From the sequence record LR588166.1: a DNA stretch of 64,000 nt. The stretch is one strand, 5' to 3'. Under the pieces are notes generated by a model. That model was not told where the DNA came from, searched no databases, and saw only the letters and a list, made by a program, of their open reading frames with translations. The position numbers and the translations under genes were made by a program. Below, piece by piece: positions 16,611-48,222 of this stretch; within the stretch, counting starts at the first letter, position 1, and each line of letters starts with the position of its first letter.

Positions 16611-16627
16611 GCAGATATTCTCTTATT

Positions 16628-16753
16628 CACTTCCTTATTCATTTCCTTATTCATCTCTATTTCATTTGTCACTTCCTTATTCATTTCCTTATTCATCTCT
16701 ATTTCATTTGTCACTTCCTTATTCATTTCCTTATTCATCTCTATTTCATTTGT
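16628..16753. repeat. 3 x 42-bp pyrimidine-rich tandem repeat
   Basis: Unit CACTTCCTTATTCATTTCCTTATTCATCTCTATTTCATTTGT at 16628, 16670, 16712. Confidence 0.9.
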
Positions 16754-16757
16754 TATT

Positions 16758-16883
16758 GCAAATAAGACTAATTCTTATTTGTGTTTGTAATTTCATTTGT
16801 TATTGCAAATAAGAATTAGTCTTATTTGCATTTGCAACGAAAAAGAATATGCAAATAATAACTATTCTTATTTGCATTTGCAC
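16758..16883. promoter_or_regulatory. cluster of three Fur-box-like palindromes
   Basis: TGCAAATAAGAATTAGTCTTATTTGCA at 16804-16830 plus two variants. Confidence 0.6.
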
Positions 16884-21690: not shown

Positions 21691-21801
21691 TATATGTATA
21701 CAAGGGCATAATATGGCTGTTACTTGTTGACAATATGATATGTGTGTTACACTTCGTATATTAAATATACATTACAATGTTTTGATTATTAGGAACATAC
21801 T

Positions 21802-22950: not shown

Positions 22951-22980
22951 AGAAAGGGAATTATAATTCCCTTTCTTTTT
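22951..22980 (+). terminator. intrinsic terminator
   Basis: AGAAAGGGAATT-AT-AATTCCCTTTCT-TTTT. Confidence 0.8.
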
Positions 22981-23099
22981 GGATCTATATTAGCAAATGC
23001 TAATTAATCTTATTTGCACAAATTTAATCCTATTGTGTTTTCTATTTTGAAGTGCTACATTACGTGTAGTTGCATAAAACTATACACAGGAGAAATGAT

Positions 23100-23648: not shown

Positions 23649-23774
23649 TTCGTTTGCTATGCGTACTAATACGTTGTATACTGTTAGTACGTATAGCAAA
23701 AGTAACATATAACGTTTTGATTTAAGGGAACCATAACATAAAAAAGAATTTGAATTGAGGTGCCCTACGAGTAG

Positions 23775-24269
23775 GTGTTCGAGATGGAGCAAATAGTGAA
23801 TATGCGAGAAGTGACATTTCTTTCCGCAGTGGATGCCAGCAAGATCGAGACGCCGAGCAACGTCATCAGCATCGGCAGCAAGGGTGATTGGTATGCCTTT
23901 GCCTGCGATCACAAGCGCGTTCTGCGGCTGGAGTTTGATGACGTAGACGGATACGTGGGAAGCGATGGCTTTCGAGTGTTCAGCCACATTGACGCCAAGC
24001 AGATCCACGACTTCGTGAACGAGTGTGGTGATGAACCGATCATTGTTCACTGCCAAGCAGGCATGAGCCGATCCGCTGCGGTTGCCAAGTTCCTGGCTGA
24101 CAAGCGCGGCTACACGTTGAACCTGTCGAAGCCTTGCCTTGGAACCACGCAATTCTACAACCGCCACGTCTACGGAACGTTGAACCTCAACGACGCCGAA
24201 AGCATGAGCGCCTATTACGCAGAGATGGAGCTAGCCGACCGGCTGCGCGGCCATCCAAAGGAGTCCTAA
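23775..24269 (+). CDS. protein-tyrosine/dual-specificity phosphatase-like protein
   Basis: IIVHCQAGMSRS = HCX5R(S/T) P-loop; GC-rich. Confidence 0.85.
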   Translation: MFEMEQIVNMREVTFLSAVDASKIETPSNVISIGSKGDWYAFACDHKRVLRLEFDDVDGYVGSDGFRVFSHIDAKQIHDFVNECGDEPIIVHCQAGMSRSAAVAKFLADKRGYTLNLSKPCLGTTQFYNRHVYGTLNLNDAESMSAYYAEMELADRLRGHPKES

Positions 24270-24271
24270 TC

Positions 24272-24571
24272 ATGCCTGACATGAGAGAAGAGTTTGAAGC
24301 CGCAATCTTTGCGGAAGTGAATGAACAGCGGGCTGCTGAAGGTGAATTTGTCCTTCAGCATCCAGAAGGGCTATTTGCCCGCGATGACGATGGCTCCTAC
24401 TTGATCCGTTGGGTCAAGAGCGCATGGTGGGCCTGGCAAGCCAGCCGCGCAGCTCTGAGAGTGGAGTTGCCGAAACCTCACCCTGCATTTGAGTACGCAC
24501 CTAGAGCCAAGGTTTTCAATATAACTGACGTTGAGGTAGCCCTCCAGCAAGCCGGAATCGAGGTGAAGTGA
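24272..24571 (+). CDS. Pseudomonas prophage-type hypothetical protein
   Basis: AAGGAG RBS; MREEFEA...AWWAWQASRAALRVELP pattern. Confidence 0.8.
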   Translation: MPDMREEFEAAIFAEVNEQRAAEGEFVLQHPEGLFARDDDGSYLIRWVKSAWWAWQASRAALRVELPKPHPAFEYAPRAKVFNITDVEVALQQAGIEVK

Positions 24572-24718
24572 ATGAGAACGCCCATCTTCATCGGCGGATC
24601 AATTGGCATAGGAATCGCCTATCTGATGAATCCTGAATATCCCGCTATCGCGCTTGCAATGGTGTTTAGCGCGGGTACCTCATTGTTCATTCACTATCTA
24701 TCTGAGGTATGGCCATGA
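24572..24718 (+). CDS. small membrane protein (48 aa)
   Basis: Hand translation MRTPIFIGGSIGIGIAYL...; coupled at both ends. Confidence 0.6.
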   Translation: MRTPIFIGGSIGIGIAYLMNPEYPAIALAMVFSAGTSLFIHYLSEVWP

Positions 24719-24789
24719 CCGACCACGCAGAGCTGCGGAGGCTGGCTAAAGAAGTGATCCGAATTGAACGAAATGAGGATGCAGCATGA
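24715..24789 (+). pseudogene. truncated Ead/Ea22-like N-terminus (24 aa)
   Basis: MTDHAELRRLAKEV... then stop overlapping the next ATG. Confidence 0.4.
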
Positions 24790-25322
24790 GCATTGACTGG
24801 ACCAAGGCACCAGAGGGTGCGACGCACTACCAACCGGAATCACGCGGCTTCCATGCGGCATGGTTCCGACTTCAAGGGGGGAAGGCTCGCGAAATGTGGG
24901 TCGTGAGACCCAGCCGCGCGCTTGAGCACATCATCGATCCGACTGTCTTCGACGAGAGCATGCAGAACCTGATCGCCCGCCCCGTAGAAGCTGCCACCTG
25001 GAACGGCCAGGGTCTACCGCCGGTTGGCCTGATGGTGGAGTGGAAGGCAGGCCTTGATCACGACTGGCAGCGCGTAACTGTGCTTGCCTACGCCAATGGC
25101 GACGCGTGGTTTCAGCCCGAGGATGGCCCGTCTTTCATCGTCGGCAACCCGGCAAACTTCAGGCGTATCCGCACCCCCGAGCAGTTGGCCGCCGAGGAGC
25201 GGGAAAAGGCGATTAATCAGATGATTTCTGATGCTGGATACGTAGATCCGAAGATTGGCACATTTGTGGCTATGCGCAATCTCTACGACGCCGGCTACCG
25301 GCGCCGGGAGGAAGGGAAATGA
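24786..25322 (+). CDS. Pseudomonas phage hypothetical protein (MSIDWTKAPEGATHY family)
   Basis: Characteristic N-terminus and GLPPVG / RTPEQLAAEERE segments. Confidence 0.85.
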   Translation: MSIDWTKAPEGATHYQPESRGFHAAWFRLQGGKAREMWVVRPSRALEHIIDPTVFDESMQNLIARPVEAATWNGQGLPPVGLMVEWKAGLDHDWQRVTVLAYANGDAWFQPEDGPSFIVGNPANFRRIRTPEQLAAEEREKAINQMISDAGYVDPKIGTFVAMRNLYDAGYRRREEGK

Positions 25323-25585
25323 GCAGACTGACCGCTGAGCAAGCCCGTGACATAGCGCGAGCGAAAGACGATGTCGATACTATCCTCAACGACATCGCCA
25401 AAGCAGCCGCAGAAGGAAAGTACGTGTACACTACCCGCGCCTATGGGTTCGGCACAGGCGGCGGGCGGCGCAGCGACGCGATCCTCAAAGTGTTGCGTAG
25501 CCTCGGCTACGACTGTGCGGTGCATGCTGAGGGACGCCAGTCTGTTGACCTGTGGCTTGAAGTGAAATGGGGAGACAAGCCATGA
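25319..25585 (+). CDS. hypothetical protein
   Basis: ATGA overlap, GC-rich codons. Confidence 0.8.
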   Translation: MSRLTAEQARDIARAKDDVDTILNDIAKAAAEGKYVYTTRAYGFGTGGGRRSDAILKVLRSLGYDCAVHAEGRQSVDLWLEVKWGDKP

Positions 25586-25944
25586 CTGACACCAACGAAA
25601 TAAAAAAGCTAGCAAAACTGGCTACGCCGGGTCCGTGGTATGCGTCCTGGGAGGAAGGCGATGATATTGCATGGTCGAATCTGTTTCCTGTAATCCGAGC
25701 AGGCAATGGCGAAGTCGTGATCGGTAACGAAGGCTTTTACAGCGATCTGGACCAGGATAAGGCTAACGCCACTTTCTGTGCTGCTGCCAATCCCCGAGCC
25801 GTCCTAGACTTGCTGGACGAGAACGACAGACTAAAAAAGGAGAACGATGAACTTCGTCACCTTTGCTCCTGCGCTAAGCAATATAACCTCAGCATGACAC
25901 TGCGCAGAATGATTGACGCAGTCCTTAAAAGAGACAAGCCATGA
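25582..25944 (+). CDS. Ead/Ea22-like family protein
   Basis: LAKLATPGPW ... AAANPRAVLDLLDE. Confidence 0.8.
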   Translation: MTDTNEIKKLAKLATPGPWYASWEEGDDIAWSNLFPVIRAGNGEVVIGNEGFYSDLDQDKANATFCAAANPRAVLDLLDENDRLKKENDELRHLCSCAKQYNLSMTLRRMIDAVLKRDKP

Positions 25945-26129
25945 CCGACATTAAAAAGCTGAAGGAGTTAGCGGAACGGGCTACTCCTGGTCCCTGGTCT
26001 GCGTCTTGGAAGGAAGGCGATGACCATTTGGGGCGAATTGCTTACTTCGTGTCAACTGGTCAATACAACATCACAAAAGAAACAGTCTTCGACATAGTGA
26101 ATGTGGTTCCCGAAAATGTGTGCTCCTGA
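25941..26129 (+). pseudogene. second Ead/Ea22-like copy, short or frameshifted
   Basis: LKELAERATPGPW N-terminus, early stop, lacks ANP..VL.LLDE C-terminus. Confidence 0.45.
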
Positions 26130-26271
26130 CGCATCTACAGCATGGGAGGCTGCCTTTGTGTTTTTCACACTCGCAGGAGGACCATTGCTTTGCTGTATTG
26201 CAATTCTTCTAGCGCCGGAGCCATGCCGACAGACCAAACACACCCAGCGATAAGCGGGAAGAGAGGAATCC

Positions 26272-26376
26272 ATGCTAACCCTTTTTGATTTTGTTGCAAT
26301 GTGGGGGATTCTGCTTCTGACGATGTTTTTGCCTATCCGTCAGAAGCGTCGCCTTATTCAACTGCAAGACGCCTAA
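26272..26376 (+). CDS. 34 aa membrane peptide
   Basis: GAGG RBS; MLTLFDFVAMWGILLLTMFLPIRQKRR. Confidence 0.55.
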   Translation: MLTLFDFVAMWGILLLTMFLPIRQKRRLIQLQDA

Positions 26377-26392
26377 CAGGTAGGAGAACAGA

Positions 26393-26680
26393 ATGAGCAT
26401 CGTTAAAGTTGCCACTTTCCGAAACGCTGTCGCCCACCTTTTCCGCGTGGTCAATGTCGACTATCACGCTTGCGTGCGCCCGGCTGAGCTGCGCAACTGG
26501 CAAAGCATCGCTATCCGCGTTCTAGCCGAAGTCAATGCTCTAGAATGCAAGCGAGCCAACCAGGATGACCGTGATTACCAGCGCTGCACTGTTGATGCTG
26601 CCCGCGAACGTATAAGCCAAGCCGACTTGCGGCTCGCCCAGCTCGAAGCTGCCGGTGACCTCAAAGAAGACAAGAAATAA
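26393..26680 (+). CDS. hypothetical protein
   Basis: AGGAG RBS; host-like codons. Confidence 0.8.
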   Translation: MSIVKVATFRNAVAHLFRVVNVDYHACVRPAELRNWQSIAIRVLAEVNALECKRANQDDRDYQRCTVDAARERISQADLRLAQLEAAGDLKEDKK

Positions 26681-27342: not shown

Positions 27343-27583
27343 CATTTACAATATATCTATAAAAGAATATATTAGTAATACAGTTGTTAAATTGCAAACA
27401 CTAATTAATCTTATTTGCATTTGCTATCTTGTATAGTAGAAACGATTTCTAAACATGGATACGAGATAGAAAACTTAGATAGGATCTCTGTTACAAATTT
27501 TTGAGTTACAATACATAGTAGTTTTGCTATTATGTGTTTATAGAAGTTTAATAACAGAATTAAAACATAAAGGATTGTCCGTC

Positions 27584-30121: not shown

Positions 30122-30620
30122 ACAAAGCAATACAGCATAACGCATTGTAAGCAACACTAAACGGGAGACACCGTCCCGCAAGCAGCCCGCCCGCGATGTT
30201 CGCGGGCTGCGGCAAACAGGTGTACAAGGTCTAGTAACGTGGAAGGCGCAGCATACCTTTCCTTAAATCGGAAATCGGTCAATGACGTACCTGCCCCTGG
30301 ACACTGCTAGACCTTGCTGCTACAAGCGGGACAGCTACAAAGGTACACTGTATGTATCTATGCTTTACCCCGCTTTGTAGCAGGTCTTAAAACGGTCTAC
30401 TGGCATATGCCTTAGTGCTAGTAGGAATCATTAACCTAAAACTATTATATGCTTCCTGGAGGTGAAGAGTATGCCGCCGCAGCATTAAATATACATTATG
30501 ATGATGATAATTATGAATGCCGAAACACCGCTTCGATTCGTTTAAAAGACAGATGTCTGAATCGAATGTTTTTGGGCAAAAAGGTCCCTTAGATGGGATT
30601 TTTTTGCGGCTGCTAACTAG
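30122..30620 (+). ncRNA. candidate structured ncRNA (260-500 nt)
   Basis: TTTACA-17-TATTAT at 30087-30115; GC-rich nested helices; no credible ORF. Confidence 0.65.
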
Positions 30621-30721
30621 CAAACGCGAATTAATCTTATTTGCAATTTAAGAAAAATACCAGTTGACTGTAGCTTGTTAACATAGTACATTTAACTCAT
30701 AAATCCGCAGGAGTAGCAGTT

Positions 30722-32928: not shown

Positions 32929-33001
32929 CAGAAAACGCTTTACAATAGCTCTAAATGTGCTATTATGTAGTTGTACATAAAATAACGCAGGAGATTATAT
33001 C

Positions 33002-33199
33002 ATGCGTAGCACAATCGGAGTAGAACATGCATCGAGAGAAATTCTTTCTGCATGGGTCGATGTAATGCAGCAACTCAACTGTGAGCATTTCTATAGCGAA
33101 CTGAAAAACAATGCAGTTCGCTTAGATTTACAGGAATATATGTATACTGAACGTCTTGTTCAGTATTATACAGATCTTCCAGTCACCAATGCTGTTTGA
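33002..33199 (+). CDS. hypothetical protein
   Basis: sigma70 promoter, AGGAG RBS, terminator at 33230-33258. Confidence 0.75.
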   Translation: MRSTIGVEHASREILSAWVDVMQQLNCEHFYSELKNNAVRLDLQEYMYTERLVQYYTDLPVTNAV

Positions 33200-33377
33200 T
33201 GCCTTCGCCGGGCGTGAACTACATTTATTAGGAAAGGGGCTTAAACCCCTTTCCTTTTGAATGTTAAGTGTAAGTGCAAATTAATCTTATTTACTTGTTA
33301 CAATTTAGTTCTTGAATTCACACATAACAGTATGTATAGTTTTAATATATAAGATACCAACATGCGAGGTTGTAAAA

Positions 33378-33830
33378 ATGAAACTTCATAAAATGAATGG
33401 TAATGTTTTTATTCGGTTTGAAGTAGATACTTCATCGGATAATTTTGTAGAAAAAGTTTACGAAGAAATTATGCAGCTTCCTGCAAAATTGTATTTCGAA
33501 AAGATAGAACATAGAACTTGGGTCTGTAACTTTTACACAGGCTACGACGAATTGGTAGAATTCGTCAATGAAATAAAAGACAGAGTTAGTTCAGAAGGTG
33601 TTTTCTTTGACAGGCCATTACAGCTAACTCTTATCAATTCAGGCGGGGTAGAAGTAAATATTTCCGATATAGAACCAGATCTTCATTATCTCTTTGATAA
33701 CGATATTACAACTACAAAACTTATCTCTATGGAAGGATCTTGCAATATGGTAGATTTGCTCATGTGCGAATGGGTACCTATTGGCATTCGAACTTCTATT
33801 GCTAAGGCATTTACTGACAAATTTTTGTAA
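33378..33830 (+). CDS. hypothetical protein
   Basis: GAGGT RBS before ATG 33378. Confidence 0.75.
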   Translation: MKLHKMNGNVFIRFEVDTSSDNFVEKVYEEIMQLPAKLYFEKIEHRTWVCNFYTGYDELVEFVNEIKDRVSSEGVFFDRPLQLTLINSGGVEVNISDIEPDLHYLFDNDITTTKLISMEGSCNMVDLLMCEWVPIGIRTSIAKAFTDKFL

Positions 33831-33922
33831 TAAAATACCTGTTGACGCATATAGCAATATGCGCAATAATATGCACGAAAGCAAGAACAGATCCAAATAA
33901 CCTTTTTATAAGAGATTATATT

Positions 33923-34570
33923 ATGTCTAAGTATCTTTCTTTTAGCGTAAACGTAGACATGGACAATACCGGTCTGCTGAAATGGTTGCGTCCTACCACC
34001 GGTCGACTGGATGGATTCGAAGAGAGTGTTAAAAACTTCGTTTCTTCTTTCCGCTCAATCGAGTCGAGCCCTACGGTGTTTCAAGTTTACGATGACGATA
34101 ACCAGCCGTTGCAAGTAAGCAACATGAGCTGCTTCTTCCGATACTTTCCGGTGTATGGTATGTGCCTTGCACCGGGTTCGATGGTCAGGGAACAATATCG
34201 TCGGGAGATCCTCGACTATACTACTGACGAGTTCTGTTCATTCAGTAACTACTTCAGTGACGGCAAGGCCATCCGCGGCGGGGCAGTCTTGTGGTGGGAT
34301 GTAGAGAAAGACTTGGTATGGTCTGTTAGTCCCGAATTGATTCGCCTTGTATATGCCCGCTTGCAAAGTGATATGGACATCGGGTGGTATCATCTCGGGC
34401 AAGAAGTTATGGCTGTAGTTCCCCTTCGTTCGTATCCCAACGATGTTGCCCGATGGAAATATGTACAAGGTAATATCTGCGGCATCGATGATCAAGTGAG
34501 CATTCGCAGCAATGTCGACGGTCGAGTCACCCGGCTTAATTGGGAATACATCGTGAACCAAGGGGGATAA
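33923..34570 (+). CDS. hypothetical protein (215 aa)
   Basis: TTGACG promoter upstream; ATG at 33923. Confidence 0.8.
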   Translation: MSKYLSFSVNVDMDNTGLLKWLRPTTGRLDGFEESVKNFVSSFRSIESSPTVFQVYDDDNQPLQVSNMSCFFRYFPVYGMCLAPGSMVREQYRREILDYTTDEFCSFSNYFSDGKAIRGGAVLWWDVEKDLVWSVSPELIRLVYARLQSDMDIGWYHLGQEVMAVVPLRSYPNDVARWKYVQGNICGIDDQVSIRSNVDGRVTRLNWEYIVNQGG

Positions 34571-34571
34571 T

Positions 34572-34799
34572 ATGGGCGGTCTTGCTAATATAGTTGCATG
34601 CATAGCTTCTATTGTTGCAATTGTTACTGGAAATATCTGGTATTTTATCGCACTGTTGCTATGCACAGCATTTATGTCGCCCGAACGAAAAGGATCATTA
34701 ATTGATGTATTTTCGGTCATTGTCGGGATTGGTGCTATATTTAACGGAGACATTGCATGGGGCATAGTGTTCATAGCATTAGTGATAATAGTTAAATAG
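34572..34799 (+). CDS. small hydrophobic membrane protein
   Basis: GGGGG RBS; terminator at 34799-34829. Confidence 0.7.
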   Translation: MGGLANIVACIASIVAIVTGNIWYFIALLLCTAFMSPERKGSLIDVFSVIVGIGAIFNGDIAWGIVFIALVIIVK

Positions 34800-35234
34800 A
34801 AAGGAAGGGGGTTTAACCCCTTCCTTTTATTGTAGGTGTTAAATGTCATCAATTTTTTATCTTAGCAAATGGACAGAATACATAGTAATTTTAAACAATA
34901 AGAGAATAAGGTTAAGTACAGCGAAATATTCTATAGGATATGTATCACTAGAAACACCTCGTCGCACATTTTACTGGACACTTTTTAAATGAAATACAAT
35001 AATCATATCTAAGTAGATACCTACCTTTATATCAAAAACTATTTTATGAAATATATTTCCTAAATCATATTACAAAAGTTATATTTGAATTTCGGATTCA
35101 TATCTCAACCTTGCATTGCAATATAAAATGCGAATATGAGTGTGCTATATGTATTTGCATATGCATGTACATACGCATAAACGTATTAAGAAATACAATT
35201 TATTTTATCCTATACAATTATCTTTAATACCTAT

Positions 35235-35579
35235 ATGTTGTTTGATAATAAAAGTATAATAAGTAAAAGATATTATCCATTGTATAATGGTTTTAATATA
35301 TTTCGCTGTAGTGTTGGATTTATATATTTTTCATATGATAAAATGTCATTTATTCACGACATATTCATGCAAACCATTTCGTTGTTCCTTATGACGTTAT
35401 TATTGTTTTTACTTATAACTCCGTTATATTATATAGGATTGAAAAATCCAGTCAATATAACTACATTTGTTTCGTGTTTAATAATAACCATTCTTATAAC
35501 AAGTTATTATTTTATGTCAGTTTTGACTTATATATTCTGTATTACTGTTCAGTCAAAAATTTATAAAAGAAAGAAATAA
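35235..35579 (+). CDS. AT-rich membrane protein
   Basis: Two TM stretches. Confidence 0.5.
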   Translation: MLFDNKSIISKRYYPLYNGFNIFRCSVGFIYFSYDKMSFIHDIFMQTISLFLMTLLLFLLITPLYYIGLKNPVNITTFVSCLIITILITSYYFMSVLTYIFCITVQSKIYKRKK

Positions 35580-35584
35580 TTTAG

Positions 35585-35678
35585 TTTCTTTTTCTTTTTC
35601 ATTATCTTTTTCTTTTTCATTATCTTTTTCTTTATCTTTTTCTTTATCTTTTTCTTTATCTTTTTCTTTATCTTTTAT
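35585..35678. repeat. 12-bp pyrimidine-rich tandem repeat (TTATCTTTTTCT)
   Basis: About 6 copies immediately before the 35682-35765 box cluster. Confidence 0.85.
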
Positions 35679-36149
35679 CATTGCAAATACAAATAATAAT
35701 TATTCTTATTTGCATTTAGTGATGTAAATAATTCTTATTTGTAATTGCGATTAATTCTTATTTGCTACAATAGATAGAATAAGAATAATTCACATTTGCA
35801 ATGCCGCTAAAAGCGCTGTAAGCGCTGTATGCTGTGTAGTAATGCTAAGCAATGCATTAGTACAGCTACGCGCACAAACGCTGTTATACGCGCTTGTAGC
35901 GCGTTTTAGGGCCCATGCGCATGCGTACACCTGTAGCTTTACATAGCAAAATGCAGAAAAGACGTCGTCTATTAACGTGCCTGTCTTAATAGAAATATAC
36001 AATTGTACAATACCAGCGAAATCCTACACACTACAGACATGCAAACAAGCAACGTGCTTGCAAGCATAAAAGTTTTTAAAAAGTAGTAGACATTGTGTAG
36101 CATCCCTAGTAAGCTACACACACATAAACAACACAACGGAGTACAAGCT

Positions 36150-36617
36150 ATGTCTAATGTAAGCATCCCTGCAGTAACGGTAGAGAATATCGGCACCCTG
36201 CGCATTGTGCGCACCGCTAACAAGGAGGTCGGAAGTGTGCTCGACCTAAAAGTTAACGGGGTAGTAGTAGGGCAAGCTTTCCCGCTCTACAGCACAAAAA
36301 CCCAGCGTAGCTGGAACGCGAGCATGCACGCTACCGTTAACGGCGTAGAGGTGCAGTTTGCACAGGAAGGCGTGTTCAGTGCAATCCGCATTGCACGGGC
36401 GTTCGAGGATGCAGTAAAGTATGCCGTTAGCAACGGCGAGCAAGGGCAACCCCTCCCCGCGCCGGCGGCGCAGTCCGATGCCCCGGCAACGGCAGAAGCG
36501 CAAGCAGAAGCCCCGGCGGCGCAGACCGAGGATGCGCCGGAGACCCCGGCAGCCGAAGCTAAGCCCGCCCGCAAAGGCGGCAGCAAAGGCGGCAGCAAGG
36601 GCGGCAGCAAAAAGTAA
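36150..36617 (+). CDS. VFSAIRI-family protein 2 with Ala/Pro/Lys/Gly tail
   Basis: TAGACA-17-TAAGCT promoter, GGAG RBS, ATG 36150; tail KGGSKGGSKGGSKK. Confidence 0.85.
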   Translation: MSNVSIPAVTVENIGTLRIVRTANKEVGSVLDLKVNGVVVGQAFPLYSTKTQRSWNASMHATVNGVEVQFAQEGVFSAIRIARAFEDAVKYAVSNGEQGQPLPAPAAQSDAPATAEAQAEAPAAQTEDAPETPAAEAKPARKGGSKGGSKGGSKK

Positions 36618-36630
36618 GCGCTGCTAACAC

Positions 36631-36745
36631 AGGAAAGGGGCAACTGCCCCTTTCCTTTTATGCCCTAGTTGTAAATGCAAATTAATCTTATTTGCATTTG
36701 CACAAGTCAATCTCCTGTTGCATTACTGCGGTAAGATGTTAGTAT
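36631..36745 (+). promoter_or_regulatory. terminator + Fur-like box + sigma70 promoter cassette
   Basis: AGGAAAGGGG-CAACTG-CCCCTTTCCTTTT, then TGCAAATTAATCTTATTTGCATTTGCA, then TTGCAT...TGtTAGTAT. Confidence 0.75.
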
Positions 36746-36785
36746 GTGCTTAGCAGTAACACATAACTAGCAGGAGCAATAGACA

Positions 36786-37034
36786 ATGGCTAAAGTATTG
36801 CATGTTAACAGCATCGGCAACATCGCCGAAGTGTTTACATCTGTAGACCTCGATAGTGCCTTGTTGCACGCAATCAAACGCTGTGCAACGATGGGCAAGG
36901 TTGAGGTTGTTGGTCCCAACGCTCCCGTGTTTGCTAGACACTACGACGCACTGACGGCGTACGACGTGCAGTGGCGCCTCGTTCCTCCGGGCTGCGGCGT
37001 TACCGTGTACGTCATTGCCGAAGACAGCAATTAA
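36786..37034 (+). CDS. hypothetical protein
   Basis: AGGAG RBS. Confidence 0.75.
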   Translation: MAKVLHVNSIGNIAEVFTSVDLDSALLHAIKRCATMGKVEVVGPNAPVFARHYDALTAYDVQWRLVPPGCGVTVYVIAEDSN

Positions 37035-37045
37035 GGAGAGACACC

Positions 37046-37348
37046 ATGAATCTCGTTCATTTGTGGATCAACGGGCGTGCTGTAACTGCCCGCAAGGTTG
37101 TCGGTAAGCACATTGTCCGCAATCCGAATAGTCCGATCGATATCGAGACTATCGACGTTGTTCGACTGCGTCTGCCCCGTGGTGTTCGTGCTAGCAGTTG
37201 GGCACTCCGTAAGGCAGTGTACCAGCTCATGGAGCAAAGCTGTAGCTGCTCGAGAGACTGTTGTGGACACTGGTTCGGCGGCGCACGCAAGATCTACATT
37301 AAAGGCAGAGACGTCAGTGTAGTTGCCGGGTACCAGCGCAATTACTAA
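37046..37348 (+). CDS. phage protein with C.C..DCCG.W motif
   Basis: AAGGAG RBS, ATG 37046; SCSCSRDCCGHWF. Confidence 0.8.
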   Translation: MNLVHLWINGRAVTARKVVGKHIVRNPNSPIDIETIDVVRLRLPRGVRASSWALRKAVYQLMEQSCSCSRDCCGHWFGGARKIYIKGRDVSVVAGYQRNY

Positions 37349-37416
37349 AGGAAAGGGGGCAACTGCCCCTTTCCTTTTATGTCCTAAGTGTAAATGCAAA
37401 TTATTCTTATTTGCAC
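37349..37416 (+). terminator. terminator + Fur-like box cassette (near copy of 36631)
   Basis: AGGAAAGGGGGCAACTGCCCCTTTCCTTTTATGTCCTAAGTGTAAATGCAAATTATTCTTATTTGCAC. Confidence 0.8.
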
Positions 37417-37566
37417 AGGGCAGTGAGATGCGAATGCAAACAAGAGGCATTCTTGATACGGCTGGGTGATAAGAATTGTTCACAAAAAGAAAAAGCTTGC
37501 GTTATGCTACACAGGTGCTAGTATGTGTATTGCAGTACCTATAAACATTAATAGCAGGATAAGAAA

Positions 37567-37887
37567 ATGGTTGACTTCAAAGGTTTTAACTGGGACGCAC
37601 TAGACCCAGAGGACAACGTTTCCACAGTTTCCATTAAAAATCACTACGAGGAACTCCTACAAAGTTTTGTTGACAACGGCATAGACTATGTGTTAGTCCG
37701 GCTGTCCCAGGAACTGCCGCACTACGAGGATTCAGATTATCCCTGCTACAAATTGGTTGACAAGTATGCAGGATGGATAGTAGGCTGGGACTACTACGGA
37801 TTTGTTGTGGAACGCATGGACACACGCCTTTTCTTTGACAACGGTACTGCAAAGGGTGTAATGGACTTTCTGGAAGCTAACAGCTAG
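37567..37887 (+). CDS. hypothetical protein
   Basis: TTGCGT...TAGTAT promoter; AGGA RBS; terminator at ~37893-37922. Confidence 0.8.
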   Translation: MVDFKGFNWDALDPEDNVSTVSIKNHYEELLQSFVDNGIDYVLVRLSQELPHYEDSDYPCYKLVDKYAGWIVGWDYYGFVVERMDTRLFFDNGTAKGVMDFLEANS

Positions 37888-38329
37888 CACAAAAAAGGAA
37901 GGGGCGCAAGCCCTTTTCTTTTGTCTGCAATTTCTGTGCAAATAAGAACTATTACAGTTGTGGTAAAAGCACAATGCAAATAAGACGCATTCTTGATTAG
38001 GCCTGATAATAAGTTCTTATTAACAGAAAAGAAACCGAATAAGAATAATTCTGAAAAAATAACCCTGCAGCGTAACACAAAGAGCTTGCAATTTGTAAGC
38101 CCTTTTTAATATGCATTTGTTAAGATTAGTTCTTATTTGCAATGATAATATCCCCGCCACGCAAATAAGAACTAATCTTAGAACAAATATTCACTTGATT
38201 TTTCTCCCAATATAGTGTATGTCTATATTAGATAAGATTAAGTCTTGTTTGCTTGTTACATTTTATATGTTGCAATGCTAAGGCAATGACAATATTATAT
38301 GTACAGCAACACAAAACAGGAGATATAAC

Positions 38330-38635
38330 ATGTCAGCAGAATTGAAGCGGTTGTTAGAGATTTTTCCAACCTTTAAATCATTCATTTATGCTAAAGGGGC
38401 ATATGGCATTGATGTTTGGAAGGCTACAGGTAGTGTTACTTTGGAACAGGTAACCAATGCTGTTAATGCAGGTAATGCAGAATGGCAATGTAAAGGTGAT
38501 CCAACATGCAGCCTGGAACAAAACAGCATGTATATTTTCATTACTATTCAGGAACCAGACTACACAGGAATGGTTGATATTGATATTTGTGTAAAGATTA
38601 CTAACGGTAATGAAGTAAGTTATCAAATAGCATAA
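38330..38635 (+). CDS. hypothetical protein
   Basis: TTGCAA-17-TATTAT promoter; AGGAG RBS. Confidence 0.8.
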   Translation: MSAELKRLLEIFPTFKSFIYAKGAYGIDVWKATGSVTLEQVTNAVNAGNAEWQCKGDPTCSLEQNSMYIFITIQEPDYTGMVDIDICVKITNGNEVSYQIA

Positions 38636-38637
38636 TA

Positions 38638-38698
38638 AAGGAAAGGGGCAACTGCCCCTTTCCTTATGACCATTGATGCAAACTATTCTTATTTGCAC
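38638..38698 (+). terminator. terminator + Fur-like box cassette
   Basis: AAGGAAAGGGGCAACTGCCCCTTTCCTTATGACCATTGATGCAAACTATTCTTATTTGCAC. Confidence 0.8.
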
Positions 38699-38771
38699 AT
38701 CAAAAAAATATCTATTGAATTCTATTATTATGATGCTATTATATATAGTGTAATTAACTCGGAGTAAAGTT

Positions 38772-39059
38772 ATGCAACCTCTAAAGCAATTGCCACAAAA
38801 CTACGCAATAATCACTCCAACTAGTGTTACTAATTTTAGCTGCACCTTTTCTGAAGCCTATTGCAAAATAAAAGCAGAATGCAAAAACGTTTTCTGTTGG
38901 GTTCGTTGGGGTGACCACGGCGTTGCAATGAAGCGCCGAATTGATCCACCGTATGTAGTGTATCGAAACAACGGACGACAACGAAAAGCAGTTCTTGTAA
39001 ACGTAGACAAAGCCCCTGTTAATTGGCAAGACGAACTTAAACAACTATACAAATGGTAA
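38772..39059 (+). CDS. hypothetical protein
   Basis: GGAG RBS; followed by terminator + box at 39061-39123. Confidence 0.8.
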   Translation: MQPLKQLPQNYAIITPTSVTNFSCTFSEAYCKIKAECKNVFCWVRWGDHGVAMKRRIDPPYVVYRNNGRQRKAVLVNVDKAPVNWQDELKQLYKW

Positions 39060-39240
39060 TTAAGAAAAGGGCTATTATAGCCCTTTTCTTATGACCGTTA
39101 ATGCAAACTATTCTTATTTGCACGATCCCGCGCTTATAACACAAGTATGTTACAAAAGCAAGAATAAAATTAACTTGACACCTATATGTAGAATATAGCA
39201 CAATGTGTTTATAAATTATATTACTACAGGAGTGTTAACC

Positions 39241-39612
39241 ATGTTCAAATGCAAATTGTTTGTAGTAGATCCTGTTTATAACAACCTTTGCTACACTCAA
39301 CAAATATGGCTCGATAGTGACATAAATGTGTGTAGCCAAATAAAGCGTATTATTTCTGACGTAGAATTGGCATGCGCAAACAGGATAGTAAATAATCCTC
39401 ATAGTCCACTATGCGTTAAATCGGCAGCATTAAAAATGGTTATGGACGGGCGCATTGACATCGAACTCAAAGATGTCGATAGTTACGTTGATCAATATAA
39501 AGACATTCTTCCTAGCACAAATATTTTGGGTGTTTTTAAACCGACGTTTTTATCTAACTGGAAAGAAGAGTGTGAACTTTATTTCCTCACTTGTGTTGAA
39601 AAAGACAATTAA
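39241..39612 (+). CDS. hypothetical protein
   Basis: AGGAG RBS before ATG 39241. Confidence 0.8.
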   Translation: MFKCKLFVVDPVYNNLCYTQQIWLDSDINVCSQIKRIISDVELACANRIVNNPHSPLCVKSAALKMVMDGRIDIELKDVDSYVDQYKDILPSTNILGVFKPTFLSNWKEECELYFLTCVEKDN

Positions 39613-39623
39613 TATAATATAAT

Positions 39624-39911
39624 ATGGAATATGATTTAAAAAATATTGTTTCGAAGACTATCTTATCTAATAAAATTAAGATAGTCTCTTTACGTACTGT
39701 AGTAAAAACTCAGTATAAAAGAGTAGACTTCCATTATAAGATAGAATGTGAAAATAGTTCTGCAAAACGTAATTTGGTGCTTGCCCGTATATGCAAACCA
39801 TTAGAACACACATTAGGTTCAAAACTTGTTTATGTAGATATTGTGCCTATCAAGTTTAAGAAAGATGAAATGCCATCTACTATTCTATCAGTAAGTGTAA
39901 TGACCGATTGA
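39624..39911 (+). CDS. hypothetical protein
   Basis: 95 aa ORF. Confidence 0.65.
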   Translation: MEYDLKNIVSKTILSNKIKIVSLRTVVKTQYKRVDFHYKIECENSSAKRNLVLARICKPLEHTLGSKLVYVDIVPIKFKKDEMPSTILSVSVMTD

Positions 39912-40062
39912 TATTTGGATTTGATATCTGGAAATATAATAGTAATTCTTATTTGCAATTATAATAAATTCTTGTTTACTTTTAAAATAAAAGCAAATTC
40001 TAGTTGCATAGCTAGCGGCACTGTGCTAGTATATTAAAAAATAAAGACAGGAGTGTTATTAC

Positions 40063-40245
40063 ATGCAAACCAAAGCAACCGAGTTGGCAGTAGGCGATGT
40101 TGTTTTCTACAACGGCATGAAAATGACTATCCAGAAAATTTCTAAAGGTCGGTGTGCAATAGATATTACACTAGTAAATACTTTGGCTAAACTCACATCT
40201 TATGTGACAGTCGACTACGACGAAGAATTTGAAGAAGTATTATAA
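40063..40245 (+). CDS. small beta-barrel-like hypothetical protein
   Basis: TTGCAT-17-TAGTAT promoter; AGGAG RBS; LAVGDVVFYNG. Confidence 0.75.
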   Translation: MQTKATELAVGDVVFYNGMKMTIQKISKGRCAIDITLVNTLAKLTSYVTVDYDEEFEEVL

Positions 40246-40262
40246 TGCAGAAATTATAGTCA

Positions 40263-40291
40263 TAAGAAAAGGGGCAATGCCCCTTTTCTTA
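40263..40291. terminator. bidirectional terminator between convergent genes
   Basis: TAAGAAAAGGGGC-AAT-GCCCCTTTTCTTA. Confidence 0.75.
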
Positions 40292-40528
40292 TAGTCCCAA
40301 CAAATGTTTGCCACTTTTGACTTGCATCATACGCACTTTCTTTTTGCGCATTTGCGTTCTTACGTTCAGGCTGTTGGGACCTTTGAAGCTATACAGTATT
40401 TCAGTAGTCCCGTCTTCATAGTTGCGTACCACATTTGCAACAATTTGACTGCCTTCCTGGAACGCTTCGATAAACACGCAGTAATTGAAATTTTCCTTGT
40501 TAGCGTTATGTGCGCGTAGTTGCATCAT
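40289..40528 (-). CDS. hypothetical protein (only minus-strand gene in the early region)
   Basis: Minus-strand CAGGAG RBS and TTGCAT...TATACT promoter at ~40568-40595. Confidence 0.7.
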   Translation of the reverse strand: MMQLRAHNANKENFNYCVFIEAFQEGSQIVANVVRNYEDGTTEILYSFKGPNSLNVRTQMRKKKVRMMQVKSGKHLLGL

Positions 40529-40882
40529 TTTCTGTTACTCCTGCGTTGTTTTGCTTTGTTATGTGTAGTATACGCTATGTGTGTACTAATGCAAGAATTT
40601 TCTTCCATTTTCTTTCAAATAAAATGTTATTAGCATCTATTCTGTTATAACATTTTCTACGACTTCATGTTTTGCAAATAAGAATTAATCGCATTTGCAT
40701 TCCTACCTATCTGCCTAAAATTTAGGCAGCCTGGGTGATTGTCTCCCCCCGCCCTATTACTGGTCTCTGTATAAAGATAATAGCACATTTGTATCTGCAT
40801 GCAAGCATTTTTTGTAGAATTTTTCTCTTGACATTCCTTGCTGTAGGCTACATTATGCACACACAGAGCAGGAGATACCATT

Positions 40883-41263
40883 ATGGCACTCATAGCATTA
40901 GTAGCAACCGCATATGACAAAGAAGGCGATAAGTTCGACTATGTTCGATATCTTAAAGCTCATATCAATTTTGTTTCTGCTCAAGATCAACTGAAAGAAT
41001 GGATCAAAAACAAAATTGATGCAAGTATAGCAGAAGTTAAAATCGGATTACGTGCAGAAATCGAAGTATTGGCCTATTTGGGAAACTATATAAGCCATAG
41101 TCAACGGATTATTAGTCCCGCTGGGATCATCATGTACATTGTTCTTGATGAGAAGTATGTTAATGAACTTCACGGTCAAATTTCTAATGCAATTGATTGT
41201 GAAGAAAAGAAACATGTAATAAAGAAAGAAGAAAACGTCACTTATATTGATTTTAAAAAATAA
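40883..41263 (+). CDS. hypothetical protein
   Basis: TTGACA-17-CATTAT promoter; AGGAG RBS. Confidence 0.8.
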   Translation: MALIALVATAYDKEGDKFDYVRYLKAHINFVSAQDQLKEWIKNKIDASIAEVKIGLRAEIEVLAYLGNYISHSQRIISPAGIIMYIVLDEKYVNELHGQISNAIDCEEKKHVIKKEENVTYIDFKK

Positions 41264-41299
41264 CTTGCATTAGCTGTAATGTATATGTATTATGTACTC

Positions 41300-41456
41300 A
41301 AGTTTGCAGCAAGACGTATTAATTTGTTTTGCTGTTAGTTGTAACTCCTGCTACCAAGTATGTGTTGAGCTAATGCTCCTGACTTGGTTCTTGGTACACT
41401 GGTTTGGGTGTACCGTTCTTGAGCTGCAAAGGGCTTGCCCGGCGCAGCTTTTTTTT
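41300..41456 (+). ncRNA. candidate sRNA (~155 nt)
   Basis: TTGCAT-17-TATTAT at 41265-41293; four hairpins; terminator with T8. Confidence 0.55.
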
Positions 41457-41536
41457 GACTAATATTATTCATTTGACAAAAAATAATAATTAAAAATATA
41501 ATAGCTTAGTGTATAACTTCCCATATTAGGCTAATT

Positions 41537-41908
41537 ATGAAATTTGTTATTGCTGCTATTGCATTGTCTTTGTCCACACTAGTTTCTGCAGAATCTATTT
41601 CTGAAGTTAAGATAACTAAAGAAACATGCCTTACACTTCTGGAATTATCTAAGATTCATGTTGATATGGTAGTAAATGAACATATGAATGCAATACAAAT
41701 TGCATCTCATATGGATATTGTATCTAATTTGTATAAGAATAATAATAGTAAATGGCTTGCATTCTTGCAGGCTCAAGCAAATATTTCAAAATTAATTGAT
41801 GACGTATATGAGTTTTCATCTACTGAAGAAAGAAAGATTATTCCTCTAGCCATATTTAACGGTTGTATGGAAAGAGTTGGTAATACTTTTGAAATATATA
41901 AGAAATAA
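41537..41908 (+). CDS. secreted/periplasmic protein
   Basis: Signal peptide MKFVIAAIALSLSTLVSA; Cys pair. Confidence 0.75.
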   Translation: MKFVIAAIALSLSTLVSAESISEVKITKETCLTLLELSKIHVDMVVNEHMNAIQIASHMDIVSNLYKNNNSKWLAFLQAQANISKLIDDVYEFSSTEERKIIPLAIFNGCMERVGNTFEIYKK

Positions 41909-41909
41909 T

Positions 41910-42221
41910 ATGTATGTATATGTAGTCCACGGAATAGTCAATACAGGCGTTGAGACTAATATTTGTGATATAGAACGTTACGTTACAGTTAACGACTTCC
42001 ATGCTGTAGCAAAGTTTCTTAATTTTAAAGAACATATAGCAGCAAACCCAAACTTATATATACGATTAATTACTACTGGATTGAATACTAAAAAGAACAT
42101 ATTAGAATTAAACTTATCGAAAAAAGAATATGTAGTATCGGGTTTTAGAGTTACATCAACTAATATAAATGAATGCATTGAATATTACCTGTGTAGAAGG
42201 ATATTTAAGTTACATGATTGA
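41910..42221 (+). CDS. hypothetical protein
   Basis: ATG 1 nt after upstream stop. Confidence 0.65.
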   Translation: MYVYVVHGIVNTGVETNICDIERYVTVNDFHAVAKFLNFKEHIAANPNLYIRLITTGLNTKKNILELNLSKKEYVVSGFRVTSTNINECIEYYLCRRIFKLHD

Positions 42222-42553
42222 ATTTATATTAAAATCCCTTTTATTAACTTCAGTTGTCAGTGTTGGCATACTACTGATATTCATTATTATTTCACTGTTA
42301 ATGTTTGGCTTAGCACCGATAGTTCCATTCCTTATTTAATTTTAATTATTTGCAAGCAAATGCAAATGCGAACAATTCTTATTATCCAGCAGGCCACTGT
42401 ACCTAATCTTCGTTAGATAAAATCTATTAGAATCTACACAGTCCATTAAAACGTTCAATTGTACATGGTGGCCAGATCTGCATATACTACACACATGAAG
42501 CAAGCAAACAGCGCTTCATAAACAAACCCAAATACAGCTAGGAGTTCCAAATC

Positions 42554-42991
42554 ATGACCAAAGCAACCGTTACCGTCGAGCAATCCGCAATCAAACTGGT
42601 CCGCCGCAACCTGGAAGGGCACCGGCAAGCCCTGCTGCTGAACGGCGTCGAAGTAGGCAGCAGCGAAGCGTTCTACAAGACCAAAACCCAGCGCACCTGG
42701 TCGGCGAAGATCGACGCCAACATCAACGGCAAGGACATCGTCCTCGAACAGAAAGGTGTGTTCAGTGCGATCCGGATCGCCCGGGCGATGGAACAAGCAA
42801 TCCTGTTCATCCTGACCGACGGCAAAGAAGGCTCCGAGATGCCGGCTAGCACGCTGAGCAAGGAAGAACAAGCCCACAACCTGGTCAAGGCAGTAGTCCA
42901 GGTCGCCGCCCACGCTGTCCAGTCCGGCGCCGCTGCCCCGGCGAAGAAAGGCAGCTCGAAGAAGCGCAAAGAAGCCCAGCCGGAAGCATAA
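42554..42991 (+). CDS. VFSAIRI-family protein 3 with Ala/Lys tail
   Basis: AGGAG RBS; KTQRTWSA ... EQKGVFSAIRIAR. Confidence 0.85.
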   Translation: MTKATVTVEQSAIKLVRRNLEGHRQALLLNGVEVGSSEAFYKTKTQRTWSAKIDANINGKDIVLEQKGVFSAIRIARAMEQAILFILTDGKEGSEMPASTLSKEEQAHNLVKAVVQVAAHAVQSGAAAPAKKGSSKKRKEAQPEA

Positions 42992-43004
42992 TCCGGACTA
43001 CACC

Positions 43005-43030
43005 GAGAAAGCACCGAAAGGTGCTTTCTC
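43005..43030 (+). terminator. intrinsic terminator with GAAA loop
   Basis: GAGAAAGCACC-GAAA-GGTGCTTTCTC. Confidence 0.8.
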
Positions 43031-43147
43031 TATGACTGTTAATAGCAAATATTCTTATTTACATCTAATCTGAAATAATAATAACTCTTATTTACAAATC
43101 ATACTGAATAGTGTATTTTACACACTAAACATTGTAGGTAATACAAA

Positions 43148-43636
43148 TTGAATATATTTGTGACTGACACAAATCCTTATGTATGTGCCAAACATCATTG
43201 TGATGTTCATCTAAGAAAGATGATAGTAGAAACAGCACAATTGTTAAGCACTACTCATTATATAATAAACGGATATACTCCTGCATATAAACCTACTCAT
43301 AAAAATCACCCATGTGCCGTTTGGATTAGAGAAAGTTCAAATAACTATAAATGGACTTATGAACTTCTTACAAGTCTTATAAATGAATTTGAATATAGAT
43401 TTGACAAACAACATGCAACTAAAATTCACCTTTCGTCATTAAAAACTATACCAAAACTCCCTAATATAGAAAGAACAGAGTTTGTCTTAGTTATGCCAGA
43501 CGAATTTAAAACAGATAATGTAACACATTCATATCAGATATATTTGAATAACAAATTTAAAGAATGGGCATCGAGATCTAACAGACCCATTTATGCTACA
43601 TATACAAAGACACCTAAACCATATTTTATTAGTTGA
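43148..43636 (+). CDS. denV: pyrimidine-dimer DNA glycosylase / endonuclease V-like protein
   Basis: MNIF...HCDVHLRKMIVETAQLLS ... YKPTHKNHPCAVW; TTG start. Confidence 0.8.
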   Translation: MNIFVTDTNPYVCAKHHCDVHLRKMIVETAQLLSTTHYIINGYTPAYKPTHKNHPCAVWIRESSNNYKWTYELLTSLINEFEYRFDKQHATKIHLSSLKTIPKLPNIERTEFVLVMPDEFKTDNVTHSYQIYLNNKFKEWASRSNRPIYATYTKTPKPYFIS

Positions 43637-43708
43637 AATATAATAAAAATGATTGACATGTACATAAGATCATATTATGCTGTATAAAACAGCAAGGAGT
43701 AGATATAC

Positions 43709-43942
43709 ATGTACCGCAAACTGAATACAAATCCGCGCCCAATGCCAAAAACAAAGGCAATTCCAACTAAATTTGTCATTCAGTACACTGCACGGAATAA
43801 AGCAACAGAAAGTTTGTTCAAAAAAAGAACTATTACATTACATGCGTTTGGGCGTCTCGATGCACAAACACTCCTATCGAAACATATCCGAAAAAATAAT
43901 TTGGAATTAGGTGTAATTATTGATTTCGGTGAAACAGTTTAG
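43709..43942 (+). CDS. basic hypothetical protein
   Basis: TTGACA-17-TATGCT promoter; AAGGAG RBS. Confidence 0.75.
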   Translation: MYRKLNTNPRPMPKTKAIPTKFVIQYTARNKATESLFKKRTITLHAFGRLDAQTLLSKHIRKNNLELGVIIDFGETV

Positions 43943-43950
43943 TTAGTAAC

Positions 43951-44021
43951 AAAGGAAAGGGGAATTAATCCCCTTTCCTTTTATTAAGTCAAATGCAAAT
44001 ACAAATTATTCTTATTTGCAC
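43951..44021 (+). terminator. terminator + Fur-like box cassette
   Basis: AAAGGAAAGGGGA-ATTAA-TCCCCTTTCCTTTT then TGCAAATACAAATTATTCTTATTTGCAC. Confidence 0.8.
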
Positions 44022-44102
44022 AGATCAGACCCTGTTGTATTCTCCATTACGTGGTGCTACACTGTAAACAGTTGCACAAAACCATAAGCAGGAGTGTTAA
44101 AA

Positions 44103-44399
44103 ATGAACCAAGTGAATAACACCGAAGAGATGGCGTACATCCGCAATCTGCTTCAGTCTGAAGATGCAGTAAAATACTTTGCTCGCAAAGTCAACGACCT
44201 CATCGGCAAAGAGGCATTCGAGCGGCTCCTTAACGGCTTGTCCTACGAGGAGAATGTGGCACTGAACCTGATGATCGAAAACAATCTCGTTAGCTTGCAC
44301 AGCGATGGCTTTGTCGGTATCAAGTTCGATCTCAAACTGGAAGACGTGCGGTCAGACGTCGACTTCACCGACGAAGGCTTCGAGCTAGAGGAAGAGTGA
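44103..44399 (+). CDS. acidic hypothetical protein
   Basis: TTGTAT-17-TACACT promoter; AGGAG RBS; host-like codons. Confidence 0.8.
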   Translation: MNQVNNTEEMAYIRNLLQSEDAVKYFARKVNDLIGKEAFERLLNGLSYEENVALNLMIENNLVSLHSDGFVGIKFDLKLEDVRSDVDFTDEGFELEEE

Positions 44400-48021: not shown

Positions 48022-48222
48022 CCGTCTATAGGTTCACTTACAAGTCACTTTCATTTATAAGTCATTTCCGTCTATAGGTTCACTTACAAGTCACTTTCAT
48101 TTATAAGTCATTTCCGTCTATAGGTTCACTTACAAGTCACTTTCATTTATAAGTCATTTCCGTCTATAGGTTCACTTACAAGTCACTTTCATTTATAAGT
48201 CATTTCCGTCTATAGGTTCACT
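48022..48222. repeat. perfect 46-bp tandem repeat, ~4.4 copies
   Basis: CCGTCTATAGGTTCACTTACAAGTCACTTTCATTTATAAGTCATTT at 48022, 48068, 48114, 48160, partial at 48206. Confidence 0.95.

Follow-up and report, generated by a model that had tools for sequence, protein, structure and literature searches.

Cassettes in the early region of phage MIJ3

The early region of the Pseudomonas jumbo phage vB_PaeM_MIJ3 is punctuated by repeated intergenic cassettes, each composed of a hairpin, an A/T-rich box and a sigma70-type promoter, and related strains differ in gene content at several of them. We analysed a window of 64,000 nucleotides from record LR588166.1; as window positions 33000–44300 are 100% identical to positions 219000–230300 of the MIJ3 record, the window corresponds to record positions 186001–250000 (coordinates below refer to the window unless stated otherwise). 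We estimate at roughly 70% the probability that these units are regulatory punctuation of an early region dependent on host RNA polymerase, resembling the promoter early stem-loops (PeSLs) of T4-type phages, and that they are also recombination substrates, with a putative co-regulating box. PeSLs are composite sigma70-promoter/stem-loop motifs that mediate insertions and deletions (indels) in T4-type phages, and an initial annotation of the window, which had flagged the cassettes between 33230 and 44021, was right that such phages use them to shuffle accessory genes (PMC2839356; PMC4122927). At the level of junction sequences, comparison with relatives shows that cassette copies (~70–115 bp, 70–88% identity) served as substrates for both homologous and short-homology recombination; the outcome, as read from the genomes of circulating strains, has been module insertion or deletion, replacement and chimeric cassettes.

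The MIJ3 genome measures 288 kb and belongs to the PA5oct group; its record places it in the genus Wroclawvirus of the family Arenbergviridae, for which a taxonomy look-up gives one genus only. PA5oct, described as a relative of RaK2/121Q-type giant phages (preprint), is without an RNA polymerase of its own and depends on the host enzyme (PMC7318152; preprint). Its direct terminal repeats are ~39 kb long and hold 105 genes, many of them highly transcribed early (PMC7318152), and sigma70-like promoters and stem-loop terminators have been predicted near transcript ends (PMC7318152; preprint). The flagged stretch of MIJ3 matches 24.8–35.5 kb of PA5oct, within this terminal repeat. For strain comparisons we used seven relatives (Paride, PA5oct, PAC2, Callisto, Cassandra, Deifobo and Ettore), all ~96–98% identical. 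The cassette elements are not described in the text of the PA5oct paper or in the MIJ3 and Paride papers.

Hairpin, box and promoter

Hairpins of the form AGGAAAGGGG...CCCCTTTCCT with a GGGG/CCCC core occur at 33230, 36631, 37349, 38638 and 43953, with 0 expected from shuffled sequences, and variants are found at 34799, 37893, 39061, 40263 and 43005. The count of GGGG/CCCC-cored hairpins for 33–44 kb is nine. Folding energies, variants included, range from −18.5 to −22.3 kcal/mol (z of −4 to −7.6), and the repeated hairpins that the initial annotation had located are thus borne out as stable folds. Three hairpins have the loop CAACTG in common and share exact words of 21–27 nt. The AAGGGG...CCCCTT stem also occurs outside of the region (14 such hairpins in the 288-kb genome, eight of them within 15 kb here and six elsewhere), indicating that it is the general terminator style of the phage, concentrated and partly duplicated here. 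An Rfam search of 15–49 kb returned no family, and the CAACTG hairpin had no match in IMG/VR.

The box has an 11-nt core, TCTTATTTGCA, with 18 exact copies in the whole genome, all of which lie at record positions 202757–230020 (window 16757–44020), a stretch of ~27 kb. Five relatives show the same confinement of the exact core, with 15–19 copies each, and a reversed-pattern control gave 0. Allowing up to one mismatch, TTCTTATTTGCA is found 24 times in the window against 1.2 expected, a 20-fold enrichment. Alignment of 27 sites (≤1 mismatch) revealed the core to be the strong half of a 27-bp imperfect dyad (11 + 5 + 11) with outer hexamers (TTTGCA) 21 bp apart; the dyad is perfect at 16804–16830 and near-perfect at 16850–16876 and 40673–40699. 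Between 33.0 and 44.4 kb, where 35% of the DNA is intergenic, all 17 boxes (≤1 mismatch) are intergenic. Boxes also occur without a hairpin (39947, 40673), in either orientation, and as arrays (16757–16876, 35690–35800 and 37937–38170). A scan of IMG/VR with a 16-nt box word gave single chance matches only, among the matches listed.

In the typical layout, the hairpin is followed by the dyad 9–18 nt on and, 9–80 nt further, by a predicted sigma70-type promoter, often TTGYRT with an extended −10 (TGnTAGTAT), as at 36718, 37497, 38715, 40004 and 44035. The box therefore does stand shortly after the hairpin, as the initial annotation had it, and the 22-nt form quoted there is exact at 37394, 38676 and 39101, with near copies at 36675 and 43999. 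Homology from unit to unit covers hairpin, spacer and box (~70 bp at 70–88% identity) and ends after the box; promoter sequences differ between different cassettes. Two spacer subtypes (A and B) can be told apart, and the cassette at 38638 is a chimera with the hairpin of one subtype and the spacer of the other. Units contain one to three genes each, so the earlier description of cassettes partitioning single genes holds for some units and is an overstatement for the several that hold two or three. The GC content of neighbouring modules ranges from 23% to 60%. Cassettes extend beyond the flagged range, for example at 22952–23018, and some strong promoters have no box, for example a perfect consensus at 41473. 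The features are as follows.

33230–33340, plus strand: cassette; hairpin 33230–33256, box variant 33269–33295 (core with 2 mismatches)
33312–33340, plus strand: promoter-like TTGAAT-17-TATAGT of the preceding cassette, upstream of the gene at 33378
34799–34826, plus strand: terminator-like hairpin after the gene 34572–34799, with no box behind it
35690–35800, plus strand: array of 3–4 boxes, preceded by a tandem repeat and upstream of a GC-rich paralog (36150–36617)
36631–36745, plus strand: complete cassette; hairpin 36631–36657, dyad 36670–36696, extended −10 promoter 36718–36745
37349–37524, plus strand: cassette; hairpin 37349–37375, dyad 37389–37415, inverted box 37435–37445, promoter 37497–37524
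37415, plus strand: left crossover of the Callisto deletion, in the cassette at 37349
37893–38298, plus strand: cassette; hairpin 37893–37921, boxes at 37937 (minus), 37975 (minus), 38131 (plus) and 38160 (minus), promoter 38270–38298
38125–38141, plus strand: right crossover of the Callisto deletion, in the cassette at 37893
38638–38742, plus strand: chimeric cassette; type-A hairpin (loop CAACTG) 38638–38665, type-B spacer and dyad 38671–38697, promoter 38715–38742
38648–38665, plus strand: left junction of the g352 module, in the cassette at 38638
38772–39059, plus strand: g352 (MIJ3_00352, 95 amino acids, no family), bounded by cassettes; in four of ten sequenced strains
39061–39204, plus strand: cassette; hairpin 39061–39091, dyad 39096–39122, promoter-like 39175–39204; right g352 junction at 39110
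39931–40032, plus strand: box without hairpin (39931–39957), extended −10 promoter 40004–40032; gene at 40063 next
40263–40291, no strand: bidirectional hairpin between the convergent genes 40063–40245 (plus) and 40289–40528 (minus)
40673–40699, no strand: near-perfect 27-bp dyad in the divergent region between 40528 (minus) and 40883 (plus)
42344–42390, plus strand: degenerate box cluster upstream of a promoter (42459–42488) and a GC-rich paralog (42554–42991)
43005–43096, plus strand: type-B cassette; hairpin 43005–43031, boxes 43053–43063 and 43086–43096 (1 mismatch each)
43951–44063, plus strand: cassette; hairpin 43951–43981, dyad 43994–44020, extended −10 promoter 44035–44063; left g363 junction at 44031
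44103–44399, plus strand: g363 (98 amino acids, no family), in three of ten strains, with 33 bp in its place in the others
16757–16876, no strand, outside the flagged range: array of box dyads in both orientations, after a tandem repeat and upstream of a paralog (17255–17959)
22952–23018, plus strand, outside the flagged range: hairpin and box cassette
27393–27419 and 30619–30645, outside the flagged range: single boxes

Tandem repeats of 42 bp × 3 (16627–16753) and 12 bp × 7.5 (35587–35676) stand directly upstream of the two largest box arrays, and the DNA around both is very A/T-rich. Upstream of the box at 44010 (43985–44005), a CAAATR hexamer has one extra unit in Paride, PA5oct and PAC2, a copy-number change that looks like slippage within the weak half of the dyad.

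Several gene differences between strains fall at cassettes

At 36.7 kb, an extra block of 765 bp with three small open reading frames (ORFs) is present in PAC2, Callisto, Cassandra and Ettore, and one of ~470 bp in Deifobo. On each side of the block stands a full copy, in direct orientation, of the 113-bp cassette 36633–36745, from hairpin and box to −35 and −10; at this locus, MIJ3, Paride and PA5oct carry one cassette only and no block. In Deifobo (~12780 of its own sequence), a 293-bp deletion within the block removes most of two small ORFs, and its junction is not at a repeat or cassette. A second difference is found in Callisto, which is without 37416–38124 and the gene at 37567 that this segment carries. 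The junction falls inside the box: a 12-nt box word is present in both MIJ3 flanks, and one copy is left in Callisto.

MIJ3, Paride, PAC2 and Cassandra carry the g352 module (gene at 38772), which is missing in PA5oct, Callisto, Deifobo and Ettore; its left junction lies in the hairpin stem, with a differing loop, and its right junction at the box at 39110. A single sludge metagenome yields contigs of both forms, with and without g352, and two RNA-seq runs that belong to one study are not alike in the g352 form that they contain. Further along, a promoter and gene at 44032–44399 (g363) are found only in MIJ3, Cassandra and Deifobo, with 33 bp in their place elsewhere, and the left junction lies 11 nt past the box. 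Replacement is seen between the cassettes at 36631 and 37349, where the Callisto module (g348–349) is 82% identical and the cassettes and flanks are ~97% identical.

Taking the four presence/absence differences together, six of eight junctions lie no more than 12 nt from a hairpin or box, compared with 24% of intergenic positions (binomial and permutation P≈0.003), a statistic that rests on four events. When the 36.7-kb block, g352 and g363 were compared in pairs across the eight genomes, all four presence/absence combinations occurred in every comparison, which implies recombination between these loci or recurrent events. Each of these differences may be a gain or a loss.

The comparison of gene order between strains that the initial annotation had called for thus yielded gene indels bounded by cassettes, and the relatives do not show the strict synteny, free of such indels, that would speak against its proposal. 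Its observation of the cassettes is confirmed, and gene gain and loss at cassettes is supported by these alignments.

Recombination substrates or ordinary punctuation

An alternative explanation is that the cassettes are ordinary regulatory punctuation with no role in plasticity: their likeness would stem from functional constraint plus a small number of local duplications, and junctions would fall between genes because viable indels must be intergenic. The presence of AAGGGG-type hairpins elsewhere in the genome is in line with this view, as are the lack of reordered or relocated modules and the fact that, in the early region at large, roughly one breakpoint in two lies away from cassettes. 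We nevertheless regard it as unlikely, given that the insert at 36.7 kb has a full 113-bp cassette at either end, in direct repeat, that the Callisto crossover falls within a 12-nt box word and the g352 junctions within a hairpin stem and a box, that the enrichment of junctions holds when measured against intergenic DNA (P=0.003), and that the cassette at 38638 is chimeric.

Several observations weigh against the reading of the cassettes as PeSL-like punctuation and recombination substrates. The independent events number only four to five, and the right g363 junction is not at a cassette. Module reordering or relocation was not seen: the alignments to all seven relatives are collinear, and the differential genes, when sought in the other genomes, were absent and not moved. 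Of the gain, loss and reordering of genes that the initial annotation had envisaged, the first two are supported and the third was not seen. Breakpoints at 23755, 25308, 25591, 26657, 45218, 45509, 46479 and 46800, all in the same early region, have neither hairpin nor box, indicating that the cassettes are one route of change and not the sole route. The distance from box to promoter varies by more than half a helical turn. Across close strains the core differs at 2.2% of positions compared with 3.4% for other intergenic DNA, in comparisons that are not independent, and genomes at 96–98% identity are too close to reveal selection on the box. Lastly, two RNA-seq runs cover the region as contigs, of which some stop in a hairpin and others run across cassettes, and the hairpins are accordingly putative terminators.

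Apparent loose ends of RNA contigs at 37418, 40286 and 40693 were considered as joints and rejected, as they are cross-matches between repeated boxes or hairpins. The early region also has a second, different mode of variation: a GC-rich block of ~3 kb at 23755–26657 is replaced or patchily shared among strains, with breakpoints within genes or at their ends.

The dyad as a putative operator

The exact copies of the 11-mer stand in flanks that cannot be aligned, the dyad is symmetric, and the sites are all intergenic and usually upstream of promoters with weak −35 elements; together these features point to a putative operator for a dimeric protein. Contacts of such a dyad would lie on one face of the helix, which we count among the operator-typical features. 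Where it is nearest, the dyad centre is at approximately −64 to −71, elsewhere it is much more distant, and both orientations occur; such variable spacing speaks against an UP element or an activator with strict phasing. As for the box regulator to which the initial annotation had assigned the units, we only infer it.

Under the proposed mechanism, the G/C-cored hairpin would end the upstream transcript, and the A/T-rich 27-bp imperfect dyad behind it would bind a dimeric sequence-specific protein of phage or host origin. One to three small ORFan genes would then be driven by a sigma70-type promoter, in many cases one whose −35 is weak and whose −10 is extended, and the box-binding protein would co-regulate this subset of early promoters. 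A module captured between cassettes would accordingly arrive already wired for early expression. A more specific version, in which the dyad is the operator of a phage-encoded or virion-delivered regulator that defines a distinct early sub-regulon in the terminal repeat, with the hairpin-box unit acting as a portable "expression socket", is one that we put forward tentatively and think rather less probable than not.

The box could instead be a site for a host regulator such as Fur, with the early genes iron-responsive or the host factor titrated. When infection begins, no proteins but those of the host or injected ones are available, and the box shares with Fur boxes its A/T-rich hexamers and a forward-forward-x-reverse-reverse layout; the mean best match to the 19-nt Fur consensus is 11.6/19, compared with 10.4 in A/T-matched controls, and single sites reach 13–14. 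Most sites, however, score only 11–12/19, where the test threshold was ~13/19 or a 7-1-7 inverted repeat, and the invariant positions of the box (the 11-nt core and the outer TTTGCA hexamers 21 bp apart) differ from those of the Fur consensus. The box motif was also not found in the literature searched, and we consider a Fur-type site improbable.

We find it similarly hard to credit that the box is a part of the promoter itself, either as an UP-like A/T element for the alpha subunit or as a box for a phage factor that redirects host RNA polymerase in the style of a MotA box. In seven cassettes the box ends 9–21 nt upstream of the predicted −35, the promoters linked to boxes tend to have a weak −35 while the perfect-consensus promoter at 41473 is boxless, and PeSLs likewise have an A/T-rich tract upstream of the −35. 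Yet the spacing between box and promoter ranges from 9 to ~80 nt, and a −10 at a constant 11–13 nt past the box is not seen. In several cassettes the stretch that separates box and −35 is not rich in A/T, and boxes point either way and also form arrays well away from promoters.

Least probable of all, in our view, and very much so, is that the boxes are signals of the terminal repeat at the level of DNA (origin iterons, injection pause signals, or sites for a nucleoid- or partition-like protein) and not transcription signals. Their confinement in all strains to the region equivalent to the terminal repeat would fit such a role, as would the two arrays that adjoin tandem repeats in A/T-rich DNA. 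Most boxes, however, are single, are scattered across 27 kb of gene-dense DNA and have a terminator on one side and a promoter on the other, and no sequence ties the boxes to the repeat ends.

Comparison with PeSLs and other modular systems

The reference phages for PeSLs are the pairs RB49/phi1, T4/PST and KVP40/nt-1 (Arbiol et al. 2010, PMC2839356; Comeau et al. 2014, PMC4122927). The MIJ3 units resemble PeSLs in being intergenic composites of ~100 bp that join a G-run/C-run stem-loop (in PeSLs a terminator or attenuator) to a sigma70-type early promoter, here a predicted one, and in being clustered directly upstream of ORFans in a plastic, indel-rich region (the MIJ3 boxes occupy 27 of 288 kb). 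As with PeSLs, a differential gene stands between two copies where it is present, and the phage without it has one copy, which is the case for the 36.7-kb block, the Callisto deletion and g352; the topology of the 36.7-kb locus is that drawn for RB49 ORF192 versus phi1. Chimeric copies, which are expected after exchange, are represented by the cassette at 38638. PeSLs also give rise to excised mini-circles, each with one motif and the gene, that outward PCR can reveal; in the MIJ3 region, the contigs of the sequencing runs compared showed no back-joint inside a module.

The differences are equally clear. The conserved core of a PeSL is a consensus promoter, often with the stem-loop within or adjoining it, whereas the best-conserved parts in MIJ3 are the hairpin and the 27-bp dyad upstream; promoter-like sites follow most MIJ3 cassettes, and a predicted promoter lies inside the 113-bp repeat at 36.7 kb, yet the hexamers differ between cassettes. 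MIJ3 is a Wroclawvirus (Arenbergviridae) and not a T4-type phage of the Tevenvirinae, and so is not a member of the group to which PeSLs belong; its region moreover corresponds to a long terminal repeat. We would therefore describe the MIJ3 system, from its sequence features, as PeSL-like, found in a phage family new for such elements and supplemented by an operator-like dyad, and probably not as a PeSL by descent or motif.

In its placement the system also resembles the early "host-takeover" gene clusters in the terminal repeats of SPO1 and T5. These phages have many small early genes, singly or in small groups with their own strong host-type promoter and terminator, in a long direct terminal repeat, and in SPO1 the phage DNA-binding protein TF1 binds near early promoters. 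To our knowledge, these clusters have no shared cassette sequence, no cassette-bounded indels and no sequence relation to the MIJ3 units. A looser likeness is to integrons, in which small, promoter-proximal mobile gene units bounded by imperfect inverted repeats are gained and lost one by one and can circularise, the last being an integron feature. An integron depends on a dedicated integrase and on structured attC sites, and most of its cassettes are without a promoter; the MIJ3 units, in contrast, bring their own promoter, no integrase was seen, and the junctions look like plain homology-driven exchange.

Cargo genes and GC-rich paralogs

We tested 23 products, comprising those of 21 window genes (33–44.4 kb), the paralog at 17255 and one ORF of the PAC2 insert, and 22 of these have no Pfam family above threshold. 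The exception, a 162-amino-acid product encoded at 43148–43636, matches phrog_624 "DNA binding protein" (E 3e-51); its match to Pfam Pyr_excise is weak (20.6 bits, under the cut-off of 23), and the PAC2 record labels its counterpart endonuclease V.

Three GC-rich (~60%) paralogs (17255–17959, 36150–36617 and 42554–42991) each lie behind a multi-box array. They share an N-terminal domain of ~85 amino acids, with 29–39% overall identity to P0002, and have disordered, basic or low-complexity tails; the family is confined to the genus, with three copies per genome. The three products (P0001–P0003) have no Pfam or PHROG family and no look-alike in the ESM Atlas, and no relatives outside of the genus were found in 50,697 phage records or IMG/VR. 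A model of the N-terminal domain (six strands and a helix, predicted local distance difference test (pLDDT) score of ~85) gave no significant fold match (Foldseek E ≥ 0.07; VIA Z ≤ 5.7, below noise). As a lead only, this family may be considered a candidate for the box binder.

A minus-strand ORF is annotated over the plus-strand paralog gene 42554–42991 in Paride (Paride_0391, Paride 21457–21879) and also in PAC2, Cassandra, Deifobo and Ettore. The 145-amino-acid plus-strand product is 97–99% conserved at the protein level and has two paralogs, and the minus-strand call is probably a strand mis-annotation. Outside of the flagged range, a perfect 46-bp × 4.4 tandem repeat at 48022–48222 lies near the equivalent of the end of the PA5oct terminal repeat (record 39080). 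The alignments of relatives break and overlap there, which suggests that its copy number varies, and the repeat may be a repeat-boundary or packaging signal.

Implications for the PA5oct group

Jumbo phages of the PA5oct group are candidates for phage therapy; Paride, a member of the group, is able to kill dormant cells. Nearly all genes in the early regions of these phages are unknown ones and vary from isolate to isolate. The cassettes would account for strain-to-strain differences in this region and locate the sites of exchange at terminator-box-promoter units, extending modular shuffling of the PeSL type beyond T4-type phages. They may also offer natural insertion sites for engineering, and the box may help to identify the regulator that acts on some of the early promoters. 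If the hairpin-box units are indeed expression sockets, recombination at them would swap host-takeover or anti-defence ORFans that are already terminated, promoted and co-regulated.

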